A stretch of DNA of 64,000 bases, taken from the sequence record PV037725.1; one strand, written 5' to 3'. The position numbers were made by a program, and so were the translations under genes. Positions 8,935 to 62,773 of this stretch are shown here, one piece after another (within the stretch, counting starts at the first letter, position 1; each line of letters begins with the position of its first letter). The notes beneath the pieces were generated by a model. That model made no database searches and was not told the DNA's origin. It saw nothing but the letters and a program-made list of their open reading frames with translations.

Positions 8935-8949
8935 GCATTGGAGCCTGCC

Positions 8950-9396
8950 ATGAAAGCAGTTTTGATTAAAGGCAATCCCCGGTTTACCCGTGTGGAAGAA
9001 GCCAAAGAGTATTACCGAGAGATCGCTGAGTTCATGGAAGGATTAAGCGTAGAAGTAATTGAAGACGAAGGTAAGCCTGAGACGTGTCCACCTAAGGCAG
9101 ACTTCTACGTAGCTCATTCACGTGGTTGCGATAGACGAATCTGTTTTGAAGGGCGGGGTAGTCCTGAGCTTTCTAGGTTCATCGAGTTTGGCGTACCTGG
9201 TGGAATAATTCATCCGGTGGATCAGGCATGGTGGGACGACGGTCGTAAAGGGATTCCACCACGTGAGCATTTCGTATTTACGGCTGACCAAAAACTGGCT
9301 ATCCAGAATATGGTTGATTTCATCCGTAAGGCTACCACCCCAGTACCGATTCAGCAATCTCGCCAGTCTGCATCACGTAGACCAGGTGTAAGGTAA
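8950..9396 (+). CDS. minimal alpha/beta-hydrolase-like protein
   Basis: GGAG RBS, ATG at 8950; nucleophile-elbow-like AHSRG motif. Confidence 0.45.
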   Translation: MKAVLIKGNPRFTRVEEAKEYYREIAEFMEGLSVEVIEDEGKPETCPPKADFYVAHSRGCDRRICFEGRGSPELSRFIEFGVPGGIIHPVDQAWWDDGRKGIPPREHFVFTADQKLAIQNMVDFIRKATTPVPIQQSRQSASRRPGVR

Positions 9397-9400
9397 CACG

Positions 9401-9434
9401 GCATAAAGCCCCTCCGCAAGGAGGGGCAATATGT
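9401..9434. terminator. bidirectional terminator, GCCCCTCC hairpin family
   Basis: GCATA-AA-GCCCCTCC-GCAA-GGAGGGGC-AA-TATGT between convergent genes. Confidence 0.8.
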
Positions 9435-9446
9435 TGTATTTCTTTT

Positions 9447-9869
9447 TTAGATCTGTTTGTCACGCTGAAGTTGTGAAGCCTTAGCCCACACCTTTTGCCA
9501 TAGGTCAACTCGCTCGCGAACTACCATTCCACCACCACGCACTACGTTTACATGTGGGTTGAGATCTGGGGAGTCTACACCTTCCAGTCGAAGGTTCTCT
9601 ATAAGCTCATCACAGCGTGATTGACCGAATGGGGTCAGTGACGGATAGAGGCGTTCCCAAAAGTCTTTGTAGAAGTCCACAGGTACCGACCAGCGCCACC
9701 CACGGTTACGCCAGTCAATTCGGAAGTAACGACGATAACCATGGAACCCACCGCCAGCGCGCCACATCTCATTACCGGGTTCGTTTACCAAACGTTCCAG
9801 TTGGATGGTGCCCAAAACTGGGAAGAAATAGAACAGGATATTACGGAAGCTTTCGATCAGTTGTTTCAT
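9447..9869 (-). CDS. hypothetical protein
   Basis: 140-aa ORF directly downstream of the radical SAM gene. Confidence 0.65.
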   Translation of the reverse strand: MKQLIESFRNILFYFFPVLGTIQLERLVNEPGNEMWRAGGGFHGYRRYFRIDWRNRGWRWSVPVDFYKDFWERLYPSLTPFGQSRCDELIENLRLEGVDSPDLNPHVNVVRGGGMVVRERVDLWQKVWAKASQLQRDKQI

Positions 9870-9876
9870 ATAGAAC

Positions 9877-10800
9877 TCACTTAAGGAATGTACCGCAGGA
9901 AGCCTTGACGTCGGTTCCTACGCGTGGTATCAGTTTTACCCTAGCATCGGGTAGGTGTCGTTGGATGAAGCCTTGTAGGTACTTTATATGCCCCTCTACA
10001 GGTTCTTTGGAGTAGTGACCTTCCGGTGGATTATACCGAACGATATTCCAGTTGACTGTAAGACGGAACTTTCGAATAGCTACGATTATTTCCAATACGT
10101 CAGCCATGGAATCATTCTCACCATCAATAAATGCATAGTGGATCTTTGGCGTCTTACCGGTGGTTAGCTGCCAGTTACGCAGTTGTCCCAAAGCATGCAA
10201 TGGGTGATCAGCTTTTGGTAACCATCGCTTACGGAACGTTGGGTTGAAACTATACGCCGAGTAATAGATCTCAGGATAAACTTCTGGATCATTGAAAATC
10301 TCAGTTAGGCTATAACCTTGCATCTCTTTAGGGAAGATAGTCGAGATCAAGAACTTAGCTTCCAAACCCCATTTTTCAGCCATACGTTTAAGACCACGAA
10401 GGATCTCGTCAGCATTCTCAAGGAAGTGCTTGTTAGCAAACGGTTCGCCACGGGCCATGAAATTGAAGTGTACCTTAGTAGCTGAACTACCTTGCTGGTT
10501 ATTACGAACTAGTTCGGCGTAATGGTCAAATACGCGTTCAGCTTGTTCGAAGTATTCCTGTACGGTAACGTCACGTAAATCAGTCTGACCAGTTGCCGTC
10601 AACCAGCACATCCTGCAAGCCTGCTTACAGCCCGTCTGAGAGCTTAGATAAACAATAAAGTAATCGTCTACCCTTTGCACGAAACGGGCCTCTAATCGCC
10701 CAGCATGGTCTTCAAACCGACGTTCGAAGTTAACAGACCGATCCAGCTCAGATCGATGTGTGGTATAGATCAAAGATGACTTATCCATTAGCAGCTTCAC
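9877..10800 (-). CDS. RlmN/Cfr-family radical SAM enzyme (atypical)
   Basis: SSQTGCKQACRMC (CX3CX2C), FMARGEP (cf. MGMGEP), C-terminal DVKASCGTF (cf. DIDAACGQL); alternative ATG at 10788. Confidence 0.85.
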   Translation of the reverse strand: MKLLMDKSSLIYTTHRSELDRSVNFERRFEDHAGRLEARFVQRVDDYFIVYLSSQTGCKQACRMCWLTATGQTDLRDVTVQEYFEQAERVFDHYAELVRNNQQGSSATKVHFNFMARGEPFANKHFLENADEILRGLKRMAEKWGLEAKFLISTIFPKEMQGYSLTEIFNDPEVYPEIYYSAYSFNPTFRKRWLPKADHPLHALGQLRNWQLTTGKTPKIHYAFIDGENDSMADVLEIIVAIRKFRLTVNWNIVRYNPPEGHYSKEPVEGHIKYLQGFIQRHLPDARVKLIPRVGTDVKASCGTFLK

Positions 10801-11050
10801 TCGACTTTAAGGTAAGGTTGTAACTGAATCCGGGTACTTCTTTGATCTCGATCAAGATCTCATGTGGACCCTTAGAATAAAAGTTAATGACTGGTTTGTA
10901 TGGGCTGAACCATTGATCGTAAACCATTTCGTCTAATGCTCTAACCAGATGGTAACCACGTTCGCAGAATAAAACACCGGCGAAATCATCACCGGTGTAA
11001 TAGTTTACCAATCGATCGATAGCATCATTTATCTCACTGATGCTTCTCAT
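10781..11050 (-). CDS. hypothetical protein
   Basis: 89 aa, in minus-strand operon. Confidence 0.65.
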   Translation of the reverse strand: MRSISEINDAIDRLVNYYTGDDFAGVLFCERGYHLVRALDEMVYDQWFSPYKPVINFYSKGPHEILIEIKEVPGFSYNLTLKSSEAANG

Positions 11051-11055
11051 AGGCT

Positions 11056-11370
11056 TTATCCATGGACTACCTCTGCATTAAGGATTGGTACTTTGAACCG
11101 TGGTTTGATTTTGATGTATGGACTGGAGCCCAATTCATCCAGAGTAAGGATCACCTGAATCTCTTTATCGCCTTTCGGGTTAACGCGAATACCGTTCCAC
11201 CCTGGGTAAGACTCGAACAAGCCTACTAACTCGCCCTTGATAATTCGGCAAGCTTGCAGTTGTGTCAGTTCAGGGTCTTCACGAAAGATACGATCTACTT
11301 CAGTAGTGATAGTAGCTGTCCACTTAGCTTCAGTCTCAGCCTTAAGTGCGACGATCTGTTCAATACTCAT
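11056..11370 (-). CDS. hypothetical protein
   Basis: GGAG RBS; 104 aa. Confidence 0.7.
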   Translation of the reverse strand: MSIEQIVALKAETEAKWTATITTEVDRIFREDPELTQLQACRIIKGELVGLFESYPGWNGIRVNPKGDKEIQVILTLDELGSSPYIKIKPRFKVPILNAEVVHG

Positions 11371-11381
11371 TTTTAACTCCG

Positions 11382-11885
11382 TTATTTAATCAAGATCACA
11401 AATGTATCAGGATGGAAGGTTTCAGCAACCCACTTATTAAATTCACCACGTTTCAGGTAACCTGAGCCTATGGTGAATTGTGCATCGTCAACTACCACGA
11501 AGCGCACATTCTTTTTGACGTCTTCGGGTAACTGTTCATTCCATTTCTCAATTGTACCTGCTGAAGATGGTACAAGTGGAAAATAATCAATTTCTTCACG
11601 ATTGGTGATTTCAATATACTTCTGATTCAAGGCGGCACGCATCTTCGTGTCCTTGGATATCAGAATACACTCATCTGGATGATTGGACATCCACTTGAGT
11701 GCACCTTGGGTAATACCGCATTGACGACCGGCCATCAAACCAATAGTTTTACAATCATTAACTTCCCAAGCTGGATCACTACTGCGCCATTCTTTACCCC
11801 AGCGGTTCCAGCGATCACGGGTAATGACTTCTAAAGCATCGATCATACCGACAATGTCAGCATAAGGTGTAATGTATTGACTCAT
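11382..11885 (-). CDS. degenerate P-loop/terminase-ATPase-like protein
   Basis: AGRQCGIT (Walker A-like, no Lys) and FVVVDD (Walker B-like). Confidence 0.5.
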   Translation of the reverse strand: MSQYITPYADIVGMIDALEVITRDRWNRWGKEWRSSDPAWEVNDCKTIGLMAGRQCGITQGALKWMSNHPDECILISKDTKMRAALNQKYIEITNREEIDYFPLVPSSAGTIEKWNEQLPEDVKKNVRFVVVDDAQFTIGSGYLKRGEFNKWVAETFHPDTFVILIK

Positions 11886-11955
11886 ATTTCATACTCTTTA
11901 GTTAAGTGTTTCAATCTAGGTGGCTTCACCTACACTATCATACCAGTGAGTATTT

Positions 11956-11995
11956 ATTAGAACCCATTTAACCACTATATTACATTGGTGAATCT
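11956..11995 (+). promoter_or_regulatory. early phage promoter (TATATTAC at 11976-83)
   Basis: ATTAGAACCCATTTAACCACTATATTACATTGGTGAAT; matches phiKZ early consensus and the other copies here. Confidence 0.8.
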
Positions 11996-12012
11996 AACCA
12001 AAGGAGTTTGTA

Positions 12013-13119: not shown

Positions 13120-13204
13120 TGGTGCCGGGAGCGGGGGTCGAACCCGCATGACCTTCGTCGGCGGATTTTAAGTCCGCTGCGTCTACCACTTTCACCATCC
13201 CGGC
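13120..13204 (-). tRNA. trnL: tRNA-Leu (TAA)
   Basis: Cloverleaf with long variable arm, anticodon arm GCGGA-CTTAAAA-TCCGC, GTTCGAC T-loop, encoded CCA. Confidence 0.95.
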
Positions 13205-16702: not shown

Positions 16703-16790
16703 TGGAGGTAAGAAAGAGATTTGAACTCTTGGGGCTATTACACCCTCTGGTTTTCAAGACCAGCGCATTAAGCCACTCTGCCACCTTACC
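16703..16790 (-). tRNA. trnS: tRNA-Ser (TGA)
   Basis: Anticodon arm CTGGT-CTTGAAA-ACCAG, long variable arm, encoded CCA. Confidence 0.95.
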
Positions 16791-17796: not shown

Positions 17797-17872
17797 TGGC
17801 TCCAGGACCGTGACTCGAACACGGGACAAACACGTTAACAGCGTGCTGCTCTACCAACTGAGCTATCCTGGA
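17797..17872 (-). tRNA. trnN: tRNA-Asn (GTT)
   Basis: 76-nt cloverleaf, GCACG-CTGTTAA-CGTGT, encoded CCA. Confidence 0.95.
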
Positions 17873-17878
17873 ATAATT

Positions 17879-17962
17879 TGGTGGTTGGAGAAGGATTCGA
17901 ACCTTCGAAGAATCAACAAGGGATTTACAGTCCCCCGGCTTTGACCACTTACCTACCCAACC
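17879..17962 (-). tRNA. trnY: tRNA-Tyr (GTA)
   Basis: GGGGA-CTGTAAA-TCCCT, long variable arm, encoded CCA. Confidence 0.95.
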
Positions 17963-61825: not shown

Positions 61826-62773
61826 ATGCCTACTAAAGTTTGTCTGATCTTCGCTGGTGGTGCAGGTCTGAACATCGCCACCAAGCTGGTTGATCTGGGT
61901 GATATCGTACATTGCTTCGATACTGGCGACAAGAACGTTGTTGACGAGCACCGTGCAGTCAATGTTACTCTGACTAAAGGCACTCGTGGTGCAGGCGGTA
62001 ACCGTAAGGTAATCCTGCCGTTGGTCCGTCCACAGATCCCTGCTCTGATGGATACCCTCCCTGAAGCTGACTTCTACATTTTGGCTTATAGCCTGGGTGG
62101 TGGTTCTGGTTCAGTATTGGGTCCGCTGATTACTGCTCAACTGGCTGATCGCAAAGCGGCGTTCGTTAGCTTCGTAGTCGGCGCAATGCAATCGACCGAT
62201 GTGCTGGGTAACGATATCGATACCATGAAGACCCTCGAGTCTATCGCGGTTAAGAAAGGTACGCCAGTCGTAGTCAACTACACTGCTAACGCCCAAGGTC
62301 GCACCTTCGATTCAATCAACAATGAAATTGCTGAGAAGATCCGCAAGGTAGTATTCCTGGTTAATCAAAACCATGGTCGCCTGGACGTGCACGACGTAAC
62401 CAACTGGGTTCGGTTCAATGACAAGCATGACTATCTGATCCCACAAGTATGTGAACTGCACATCGAAACCGCTCGTAAAGATGCAGAGAACGTACCTGAG
62501 GCCATCTCGACGATCAGTCTGTATCTCGATGCAGCTAAAGAAGTTGCGTTCGGTACCCCGATCTATCGTAAGGCTGGTATCATCAAAGCTGATGATCTCG
62601 ATGCCACCGATGAGCAGATCCACTTCGTCATTAACTCCGTGGGCGTGACCGAGATCATGAAAACGATCACTGACACCAAACTGGAGATGACTCGTCAACA
62701 GTCTAAGTTCGCACAACGTAGCCCAATCCTCGACGCTGATGATAACGTCGATGAAGACTGCATGGTAGTTTGA
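61826..62773 (+). CDS. phuZ: phage tubulin PhuZ
   Basis: MPTKVCLIFAGGAG, GAGG, tubulin signature SLGGGSGS, T7 loop LDVHD, acidic C-terminal tail; GAGGA RBS. Confidence 0.95.
   Translation: MPTKVCLIFAGGAGLNIATKLVDLGDIVHCFDTGDKNVVDEHRAVNVTLTKGTRGAGGNRKVILPLVRPQIPALMDTLPEADFYILAYSLGGGSGSVLGPLITAQLADRKAAFVSFVVGAMQSTDVLGNDIDTMKTLESIAVKKGTPVVVNYTANAQGRTFDSINNEIAEKIRKVVFLVNQNHGRLDVHDVTNWVRFNDKHDYLIPQVCELHIETARKDAENVPEAISTISLYLDAAKEVAFGTPIYRKAGIIKADDLDATDEQIHFVINSVGVTEIMKTITDTKLEMTRQQSKFAQRSPILDADDNVDEDCMVV

Follow-up and report, generated by a model that had tools for sequence, protein, structure and literature searches.

Pseudomonas phage Viktualia, a jumbo phage that resembles 201phi2-1 and has a gene for the tubulin PhuZ, encodes a short RlmN-like radical S-adenosylmethionine (SAM) enzyme within the 64,000-nucleotide stretch of record PV037725.1 analysed here (the window). 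In this protein the site of the resolving cysteine of RlmN and Cfr is occupied by a tyrosine, Tyr51, and the same replacement characterizes its relatives in phages, plasmids and bacteria. We regard it as very probable that the Tyr-type short RlmN-like proteins constitute a real and distinct family. Our reading, favoured tentatively and at somewhat below even chances, is that they are active, mostly viral class A (RlmN/Cfr-type) enzymes of a distinct kind, in which tyrosine performs the resolving step and which probably act on tRNA or other RNA. Radical SAM enzymology has a textbook example in the two-cysteine mechanism of RlmN and Cfr, in which the role of the second cysteine, as a base or as a disulfide/radical-anion partner, is debated. 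A natural Cys-to-Tyr replacement, retained by strong selection across hundreds of lineages and accompanied by changes at His235 and Met178 (RlmN numbering), offers an experimental handle on what is required of a resolving residue. Homology to RlmN and Cfr was already apparent from database names ("RlmN", "Cfr family", "Fe-S-cluster redox"); our literature search found no paper on the Tyr variant or its gene linkage.

A tyrosine takes the place of the resolving cysteine

Residue numbers follow the 307-aa open reading frame (ORF). Equivalent positions were assigned by HMMER against PDB 6fz6 and by MAFFT against Escherichia coli RlmN from MG1655, in which cysteines 118, 125, 129, 132 and 355 were verified, and the two alignments agree. 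An earlier note, made from the letters of the window alone, had described a CX3CX2C motif, a GEP motif and a C-terminal ASCG cysteine equivalent to Cys355; all are present and align with RlmN, to which the protein is 18% identical. The cluster cysteines C58, C62 and C65 correspond to C125, C129 and C132 of RlmN, G118-E119-P120 to G179-E180-P181, and C302 in ASCG to C355 in AACG. Further equivalences are E37 with E105, N257 with N312, and G295, D297, C302 and G303 with G348, D350, C355 and G356. The change from MGMGEP to MARGEP, also reported earlier, was confirmed by the alignment. It leaves in place the counterpart of M176, a residue proposed to stabilise the thiyl radical in RlmN (PMC9692996).

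The resolving cysteine (C118 in RlmN, C105 in Cfr) lies seven residues before the first cluster cysteine, and Tyr51 occupies this site. The segment IVYLSSQTGC aligns with TLCVSSQVGC without a gap through the first cluster cysteine, bearing out the Cys-to-Tyr replacement claimed in the earlier note. With only four cysteines in the whole protein (C58, C62, C65 and C302), none is spare for the C118 site, and another cysteine as the resolving residue is ruled out. Residue 50, directly before the tyrosine, is Val in the window protein and Cys in 54 of 351 relatives, where it forms a C-Y pair.

The N-terminal helical domain is missing, as had been noted. Pfam gave no match to the HhH2 N-terminal domain (RlmN_N, PF21016), and the first ~70-90 residues of E. 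coli RlmN have no counterpart, the alignment starting at about residue 73-88. Longer family members contain no recognisable extra domain and no RlmN_N. An ORF of 60-110 aa overlaps the start of the enzyme gene in many phages; a small conserved partner that would supply a cysteine or an RNA-binding domain was considered and ruled out, as the start-overlapping ORFs are not homologous across lineages. The isoelectric point was uninformative as a sign of RNA binding.

The tyrosine is invariant across a large family

At E <= 1e-3, a word-index search of the 90%-identity clusters found 1919 relatives, and a profile search run exhaustively over 1.84 billion cluster representatives (50% identity) gave 2952 matches, 420 of them at E <= 1e-30. 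The Tyr-type family thus comprises at least 420 clusters at 50% identity. Tyrosine occupies the C118 site in 149 of the top 150 cluster representatives and, among 351 aligned relatives, in 347 of the 348 that are full-length; C302 is just as invariant. Over 68 loci the codon for Tyr51 is TAC in 40 and TAT in 28; both codons are in use, so selection holds the residue while its codon drifts, and Tyr51 is a hallmark of the family rather than a lesion. The description of the enzyme as lacking the resolving cysteine was therefore accurate as to the cysteine and undersold the site, which holds a family-invariant residue.

The sole member with a cysteine is P0249, a metagenomic singleton of 293 aa (HFVVCLSSQTGC). 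Its nearest kin, at 43-44% identity, all have Tyr, from which Cys is one transition away, and this natural Tyr-to-Cys variant would be a ready comparison protein. The family signature reads Y-[LIV]-S-S-Q-x-G-C...C..C, M-A-R-G-E-P, Y-Y-S-x-Y-S and A-S-C-G-x-F in proteins of ~290-300 aa; the window protein has every element of it.

Concerted changes surround the tyrosine

A sister clade consists of Tunturiibacter phage Tunturi_5 gp170 (L064:4950-5948) and ~118 metagenomic proteins (including P0351-P0463). Its members resemble the Tyr-type family in length (~290-340 aa), in lacking HhH2 and in having the same Cys-loop, and they are likewise mostly metagenomic or viral and uncharacterised. Unlike the window protein, to which they are 23-26% identical, they have His at the H235 site and, in ~95% of cases, Cys at the C118 site. 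Where this cysteine is lost, it has become Val and never Tyr (six Val members, some with a Cys one residue later).

We compared alignment columns among 150 family members, 107 sister-clade members and E. coli RlmN. Residues Y51, Y183, R117, Y179, Y180, R39, R43, N24 and N113 are invariant in the family and differ from both the sister clade and RlmN. Position 183 is Tyr in all 150 sampled family members, and His in 106 of the 107 sister-clade members and in E. coli RlmN. Position 117 is Arg in the family, Met (M178) in RlmN and mostly Cys, Val or Ala in the sister clade. Common to all three groups are E105, M176, G179/E180, S233, R242, N286/D287, N312, G348, D350, C355 and G356 (RlmN numbering). 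Because the positions serving SAM and the methyl-carrier cysteine are kept while Y51, Y183 and R117 have switched, the SAM and methyl-cysteine machinery is conserved, and what was rebuilt is the vicinity of the resolving residue. The Cys-retaining sister clade also lacks the N-terminal domain, so the domain was lost before the switch to tyrosine. The invariance of Tyr together with the concerted switches points to a functional replacement, in which the chemistry, the substrate or both would differ from those of RlmN and Cfr. The earlier note had put these two options first, and the evidence supports them jointly as one kind of explanation.

In a more distant short radical SAM relative, gene_104 of Klebsiella phage 05F01 (L065:4863-5792), the C118 site is Val, followed three residues later by a Cys (LVLSCSHGC). 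An "ADP-ribosylation" gene immediately precedes gene_104, and the anaerobic ribonucleotide reductase gene comes after it.

The predicted fold is of the RlmN type

The AlphaFold2 model of the enzyme has a mean predicted local distance difference test score (pLDDT) of 89.3 and a predicted template modelling (TM) score of 0.88. The pLDDT falls to 77 and 62 in the last two blocks, which include the Cys302 loop, as expected for a mobile loop. Foldseek matched the model to RlmN structures with E = 1e-13 to 1e-11 and TM 0.64-0.73. The best matches among PDB entries and Swiss-Prot models are all RlmN or Cfr (Cfr at TM 0.57), and the next fold is that of the pyruvate formate-lyase activase (1e-7). The model thus predicts an RlmN-type fold, with a partial TIM barrel, a beta-extension and a C-terminal loop.

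Homology to RlmN far exceeds chance, yet profile scores place the protein well outside the named families. The RlmN model TIGR00048 gave E = 3.7e-13 and 49.2 bits against a cut-off of 290, and the Cfr models TIGR04432 and NF000424 gave 29 bits against 550 and 34.8 bits against 530, all below cut-off. The enzyme is a full-length member of PHROG 27142 (E = 2e-160), and no NCBIfam or Pfam model covers the Tyr-type family.

A possible mechanism

In the mechanism that we propose, Cys302 would be methylated by SAM, and a second SAM would yield a 5'-deoxyadenosyl radical that generates the Cys-S-CH2 radical. This radical would add to an sp2 carbon of a nucleobase. Tyr51, acting as tyrosinate and/or as a hydrogen-atom relay and perhaps tuned by Arg117, would then resolve the adduct and allow turnover. 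Whether the resolving step has been taken over by Tyr51 with Tyr183 and Arg117 seems to us evenly poised.

In the current view of RlmN and Cfr, the second cysteine removes the C2/C8 proton from the adduct (PMC9692996; Cfr cryo-electron microscopy preprint). When Cfr is cross-linked, the C-beta at position 105 lies 3.6 Å from the attacked C8 (Cfr cryo-electron microscopy preprint). A tyrosine has no room where the cysteine sits 3 Å from the adenine carbon; its ring would be sterically incompatible with the adenine pose of RlmN and Cfr, so the pose of the substrate would have to differ. The substrate or the target atom is probably not that of C2 methylation at A2503 or A37. A nucleobase of tRNA or other RNA as the substrate, held in a pose other than that of RlmN and Cfr, falls in our judgement just short of an even chance. 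The likeliest substrate class would be tRNA or other RNA, and the enzyme would belong to a phage gene set for tRNA maintenance and counter-defence.

The gene and its surroundings in the window

The coordinates of the gene, its motifs and the adjoining features are collected in Table 1. Window bases 9000-12000, which include the gene, are 100% identical to the Viktualia record. Relatives of the enzyme begin near ORF residues 5-10, and the ATG corresponding to M5 overlaps the stop of the upstream gene; the true product is therefore probably the 303-aa protein starting there. This ATG overlaps the final codons of the upstream 89-aa gene (ATGGATAA), which suggests that the two genes are translationally coupled. 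The GTG overlaps the 89-aa gene by 20 nt (10781-10800). In 201phi2-1 the 89-aa gene has an unannotated homologue between gp435 and gp434 (L062:4745-5035; 26% identity, E = 1e-9), and synteny of the genes upstream of the enzyme is confined to 201phi2-1-like phages. The G+C-rich hairpin is likely a bidirectional terminator that ends the five-gene run. A sigma-70 promoter scan of the run gave fewer matches than shuffled sequences; it is uninformative for a phage of this group, since phiKZ-like phages use their own RNA polymerases.

The genes for the Ser, Asn and Tyr tRNAs lie 6-7 kb from the enzyme gene. All four tRNAs of the window have A37 and encode their CCA end, and three of the four (Leu, Ser and Tyr) are class II tRNAs with a long variable arm. 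From their context, they are candidate substrates of the enzyme.

Table 1. Coordinates of the enzyme gene, its motifs and adjoining features in the window
Feature	Position	Strand	Remark
Window start			about position 62,000 of PV037725.1 (322,655 bp)
Convergent gene beyond the run	8938-9396	+
G+C-rich hairpin, 8-bp stem	9408-9427		between the convergent genes 8938-9396 (+) and 9447-9869 (-)
Five same-strand genes including the enzyme gene	9447..11885	-	upstream ORFs of 167, 104 and 89 aa, downstream ORF of 140 aa; other than the enzyme, hypothetical
Last gene of the run	9447-9869	-
Short RlmN-like radical SAM ORF	9877..10800	-	307 aa from GTG at 10800
ATG of the enzyme gene	10788	-	M5 of the ORF; GenBank start, XYH45753.1, 303 aa
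Glu37	10690..10692	-	equivalent to RlmN Glu105; invariant in the Tyr-type family, the sister clade and RlmN
Residue 50	10651-10653	-
Codon TAT, Tyr51	10648..10650	-	site of RlmN C118 / Cfr C105
CKQACRMC, CX3CX2C motif (C58, C62, C65)	10606..10629	-	holds the radical SAM [4Fe-4S] cluster
MARGEP, SAM-binding "GGE-like" motif	10441..10458	-	M115 equivalent to RlmN M176; R117 in place of M178
Tyr183	10252..10254	-	site of His235, RlmN "SLHA" motif
ASCG loop with Cys302	9892..9903	-	equivalent to the methyl-carrier Cys355 of RlmN
tRNA-Leu(UAA)	13120..13204	-	nearest phage tRNA gene, 2.3 kb from the enzyme gene
tRNA-Ser(UGA)	16703-16790	-
tRNA-Asn(GUU)	17797-17872	-
tRNA-Tyr(GUA)	17879-17962	-

Distribution and RNA-related neighbours

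Most of the family is viral or borne on plasmids. Carriers among phages include 201phi2-1 (gp434; 81% identity), D6, RVTF4, Psa21 and Phabio (63-67%) and, further off, Caulobacter phages CcrColossus and CcrPW and Brevundimonas jumbo phages (40-45%). Clusters of the family in the ESM Atlas are ~75% viral. Solo copies are found on Pseudomonas megaplasmids of ~0.9-1.2 Mb, including pMPPla107 (L075), a plasmid of Pseudomonas sp. FeN3W (L076) and three others (L028, L032 and L061), and a tblastn search of plasmids placed the family on other large plasmids as well. Chromosomal copies occur in Planctomycetota and Myxococcota.

Among the solo genes we found no neighbour conserved at the operon level. 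Independent lineages repeatedly have genes for RNA-end and tRNA functions no more than a few kilobases away, which is suggestive of an RNA-centred role. In Viktualia and Psa21, tRNA genes lie 1-2.5 kb from the enzyme gene; Psa21 has four of them upstream and RtcB ~1 kb downstream. A CCA-adding enzyme is encoded 2-3 kb from the gene in CcrColossus and Domovoi. Nearby genes at three further loci specify a Pnkp-like kinase-phosphatase-ligase, an Rnl1-like ligase and RNase II/R (L072), a CCA/polyA-polymerase family protein, an RNA ligase and PTH2 (L074), and PTH2 with a hibernation factor (L002). On the Pseudomonas sp. FeN3W plasmid, RNase II/R follows 45 bp downstream, and in five unrelated metagenomic contigs (L043, L044, L050, L052 and L053) a tRNA-Ser adjoins the gene. 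On pMPPla107 the gene lies within a long run of hypotheticals, 11 kb from a gene of the RNA ligase family. In two alphaproteobacterial metagenome-assembled genomes (L014:1301-6849 and L017:1318-6843) it directly follows the phoH(ybeZ)-ybeY-corC-lnt operon, a chromosomal and housekeeping-looking setting unlike the other contexts.

A four-gene module with AbiEii in two bacterial phyla

At 36 of the 57 bacterial genome loci, which fall in Planctomycetota, Myxococcota and some doubtfully assigned bins, the Tyr-type gene stands next to, and divergent from, genes for a sulfotransferase-like P-loop protein, an RNI-type leucine-rich repeat (LRR) protein and an AbiEii nucleotidyltransferase, these three on one strand (for example L008:2123-6870, and at L010-L012, L015, L016, L019, L024-L027, L029, L030, L034, L038, L041, L042, L046, L051, L054 and others). 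In the best cases only tens of bases separate the divergent starts. The AbiEii-type protein matches PF08843 with E of 1e-21 to 1e-23 and keeps the LRGG...DxD motifs, the LRR protein has 500-700 aa, and the sulfotransferase-like gene is present at 20 of the module loci. PADLOC matched AbiEii alone, leaving the LRR and sulfotransferase-like proteins unmatched. By tblastn, none of the three partner genes occurs in the window or in the fetched phage loci, and our literature search yielded nothing that connects AbiEii with radical SAM enzymes and nothing on the four-gene module.

In a quick maximum-likelihood tree, the AbiEii-linked genes form one clade of 41 rows (Shimodaira-Hasegawa-like approximate likelihood ratio test 97), nested among solo genes from phages, plasmids and metagenomes; the root, on very long outgroup branches, is unsure. 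The gene of the window falls in a solo clade of Pseudomonas phages. AbiEii/MenT-family enzymes modify tRNA 3' ends, and the linkage would fit an RNA-centred context. The repeated occurrence of the family near tRNA genes and genes for tRNA-end enzymes and RNA ligases, and the linkage to AbiEii in two phyla, suggest a further RNA-modification layer in phage-host conflict.

Weighing the alternatives

Several points weigh against an RNA-modifying enzyme resolved by tyrosine. Our literature search found nothing on the Tyr variant or on a phage RlmN homologue, and no paper or biochemical data on any Tyr-type member. To our knowledge, a tyrosine acting as resolving base or relay is without precedent in this enzyme class. 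An enzyme that has lost its RNA-binding N-terminal domain might just as well act on something other than RNA. The neighbourhoods are loose, extending over kilobases rather than operons, the functional category was picked after they had been seen, and several lineages have no RNA-related neighbour (L073 and 201phi2-1). Finally, the tRNAs of the window are not RlmN-type substrates. The E. coli m2A37 (2-methyladenosine 37) set comprises Arg/Asp/Gln/Gln/Glu/His tRNAs (PMC5130265), and none of the four tRNAs of the window, Leu(UAA), Ser(UGA), Asn(GUU) and Tyr(GUA), belongs to it, as the earlier note had stated.

One alternative, which we consider improbable, is radical chemistry without methylation. 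The 5'-deoxyadenosyl radical would take a hydrogen from the substrate, with Cys302 and Tyr51 as donors or relays much as in the Cys/Tyr relay of spore photoproduct lyase, and the reaction might repair, isomerise or reduce a damaged or modified nucleotide. Pairs of Cys and Tyr are known radical relays; the family has gained three invariant tyrosines, at 51, 179/180 and 183, and RNA-repair enzymes recur near the gene. The methyl-cysteine loop G-x-D-x-x-A-S-C-G-x-F and Met115, the counterpart of M176, are nonetheless conserved as in RlmN and best fit a methyl carrier.

Equally improbable in our view is C-methylation of a substrate other than RNA, whether phage DNA, a nucleotide or another small molecule, with the loss of HhH2 reflecting the change. 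The absent domain plays a crucial part in how Cfr and RlmN bind rRNA, an NTP_transferase gene overlaps the 3' end of the gene at one locus (L071), and nucleotide-metabolism genes are common nearby in some phages. Against this, residues that contact the ribose-phosphate of the target region are kept (N257, equivalent to N312, and the C-terminal loop), the genes that recur nearby encode RNA-end and tRNA enzymes, not DNA modification, and the sister clade also lacks the domain, whose loss preceded the switch to tyrosine.

The earlier note had also raised a deliberate trap, in which the enzyme stays covalently attached to host rRNA or tRNA after radical addition and, in a single turnover, poisons or marks the RNA. 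Its premise that RlmN C118 mutants remain cross-linked to RNA is correct: the C118A/S variants of RlmN and the C105A/S variants of Cfr behave so (PMC9692996; PDB 5hr7; Cfr preprint). The enzyme has no other cysteine, and the bacterial relatives adjoin an AbiEii toxin-type gene, which makes a toxic role in conflict conceivable. For a trap, any residue other than Cys would suffice, yet Tyr is found in 347 of 348 relatives with synonymous codon turnover, and losses of the cysteine in the sister clade give Val rather than Tyr. The concerted change at two more active-site positions looks like a rebuilt catalytic apparatus, and for an accessory phage protein to inactivate abundant RNAs stoichiometrically would be inefficient. 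The invariance of the tyrosine in particular disfavours a trap, and we hold it to be quite improbable.

It is less probable still that the protein is an ordinary RlmN orthologue making m2A2503 or m2A37 with turnover. Several GenBank and Joint Genome Institute (JGI) records are so named and RlmN is the best fold match; the scores of 49 bits against 290, and of 29-35 against 530-550 for Cfr, the absence of both C118 and the N-terminal domain, the 18% identity and the expected steric conflict of the tyrosine with the adenine pose all speak against it. An inactive relic or pseudoenzyme, to which the absence of a residue essential in RlmN and Cfr might point, can practically be set aside, given the intact ORF, the 420 clusters at E <= 1e-30 and the invariance of the cluster, SAM and Cys-loop motifs in more than 340 phage, plasmid and bacterial sequences.

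We therefore return to an active enzyme in which tyrosine resolves the adduct. A wider version of this reading, unlikely as a whole, would see a new class A radical SAM branch whose Tyr/Tyr/Arg set gives either turnover, through a tyrosinate/tyrosyl relay, or a programmed covalent RNA adduct. It would form one arm of an unrecognised tRNA-centred conflict, acting solo in large phages and megaplasmids beside tRNA, CCA-adding and RNA-ligase genes, and in Planctomycetota and Myxococcota wired to AbiEii, LRR sensor-like and sulfotransferase-like proteins.

Comparison with known systems

GenBank names the product XYH45753.1 a "Fe-S-cluster redox domain-containing protein", and relatives carry the names "ribosomal RNA large subunit methyltransferase N" (phages Psa21 and D6) or "adenine C2-methylase RlmN" (JGI). 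The corresponding name of PHROG 27142, "Fe-S-cluster redox domain-containing", is the old COG0820 name; it hides the relationship to RlmN and conveys no functional knowledge. Tyr-type genes should not carry an rlmN or cfr annotation. A known anti-phage defence system was rejected as an identity for the enzyme, whose matches in PADLOC-DB 2.0 are at chance level only (E > 0.02).

The best match among solved structures is the radical SAM methyltransferase of Sphaerobacter thermophilus, 6fz6 (phmmer E = 5e-6; Foldseek E = 1.3e-13, TM 0.73), which, unlike the enzyme, has Cys at the C118 site (TVCVSCQVGC) and an MGMGEP motif. Cfr (PDB 9p0p), the methylase that makes 8-methyladenosine at A2503 and confers PhLOPSA (phenicol, lincosamide, oxazolidinone, pleuromutilin and streptogramin A) resistance, shares the class A scaffold. 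The two-cysteine logic belongs to Cfr; the enzyme has no equivalent of C105 and no N-terminal domain, and there is no sign that its gene is a resistance gene. RlmN of E. coli (PDB 3rfa and 5hr7; TIGR00048) is a dual-specificity m2A2503/m2A37 methyl synthase. The enzyme resembles it in fold (TM 0.64-0.70), in CX3CX2C and SSQxGC and in the spacing from the C118 site to the cluster, and differs in lacking HhH2 and in the replacements of C118 by Tyr, H235 by Tyr and M178 by Arg. The two are unlikely to act on the same substrate.

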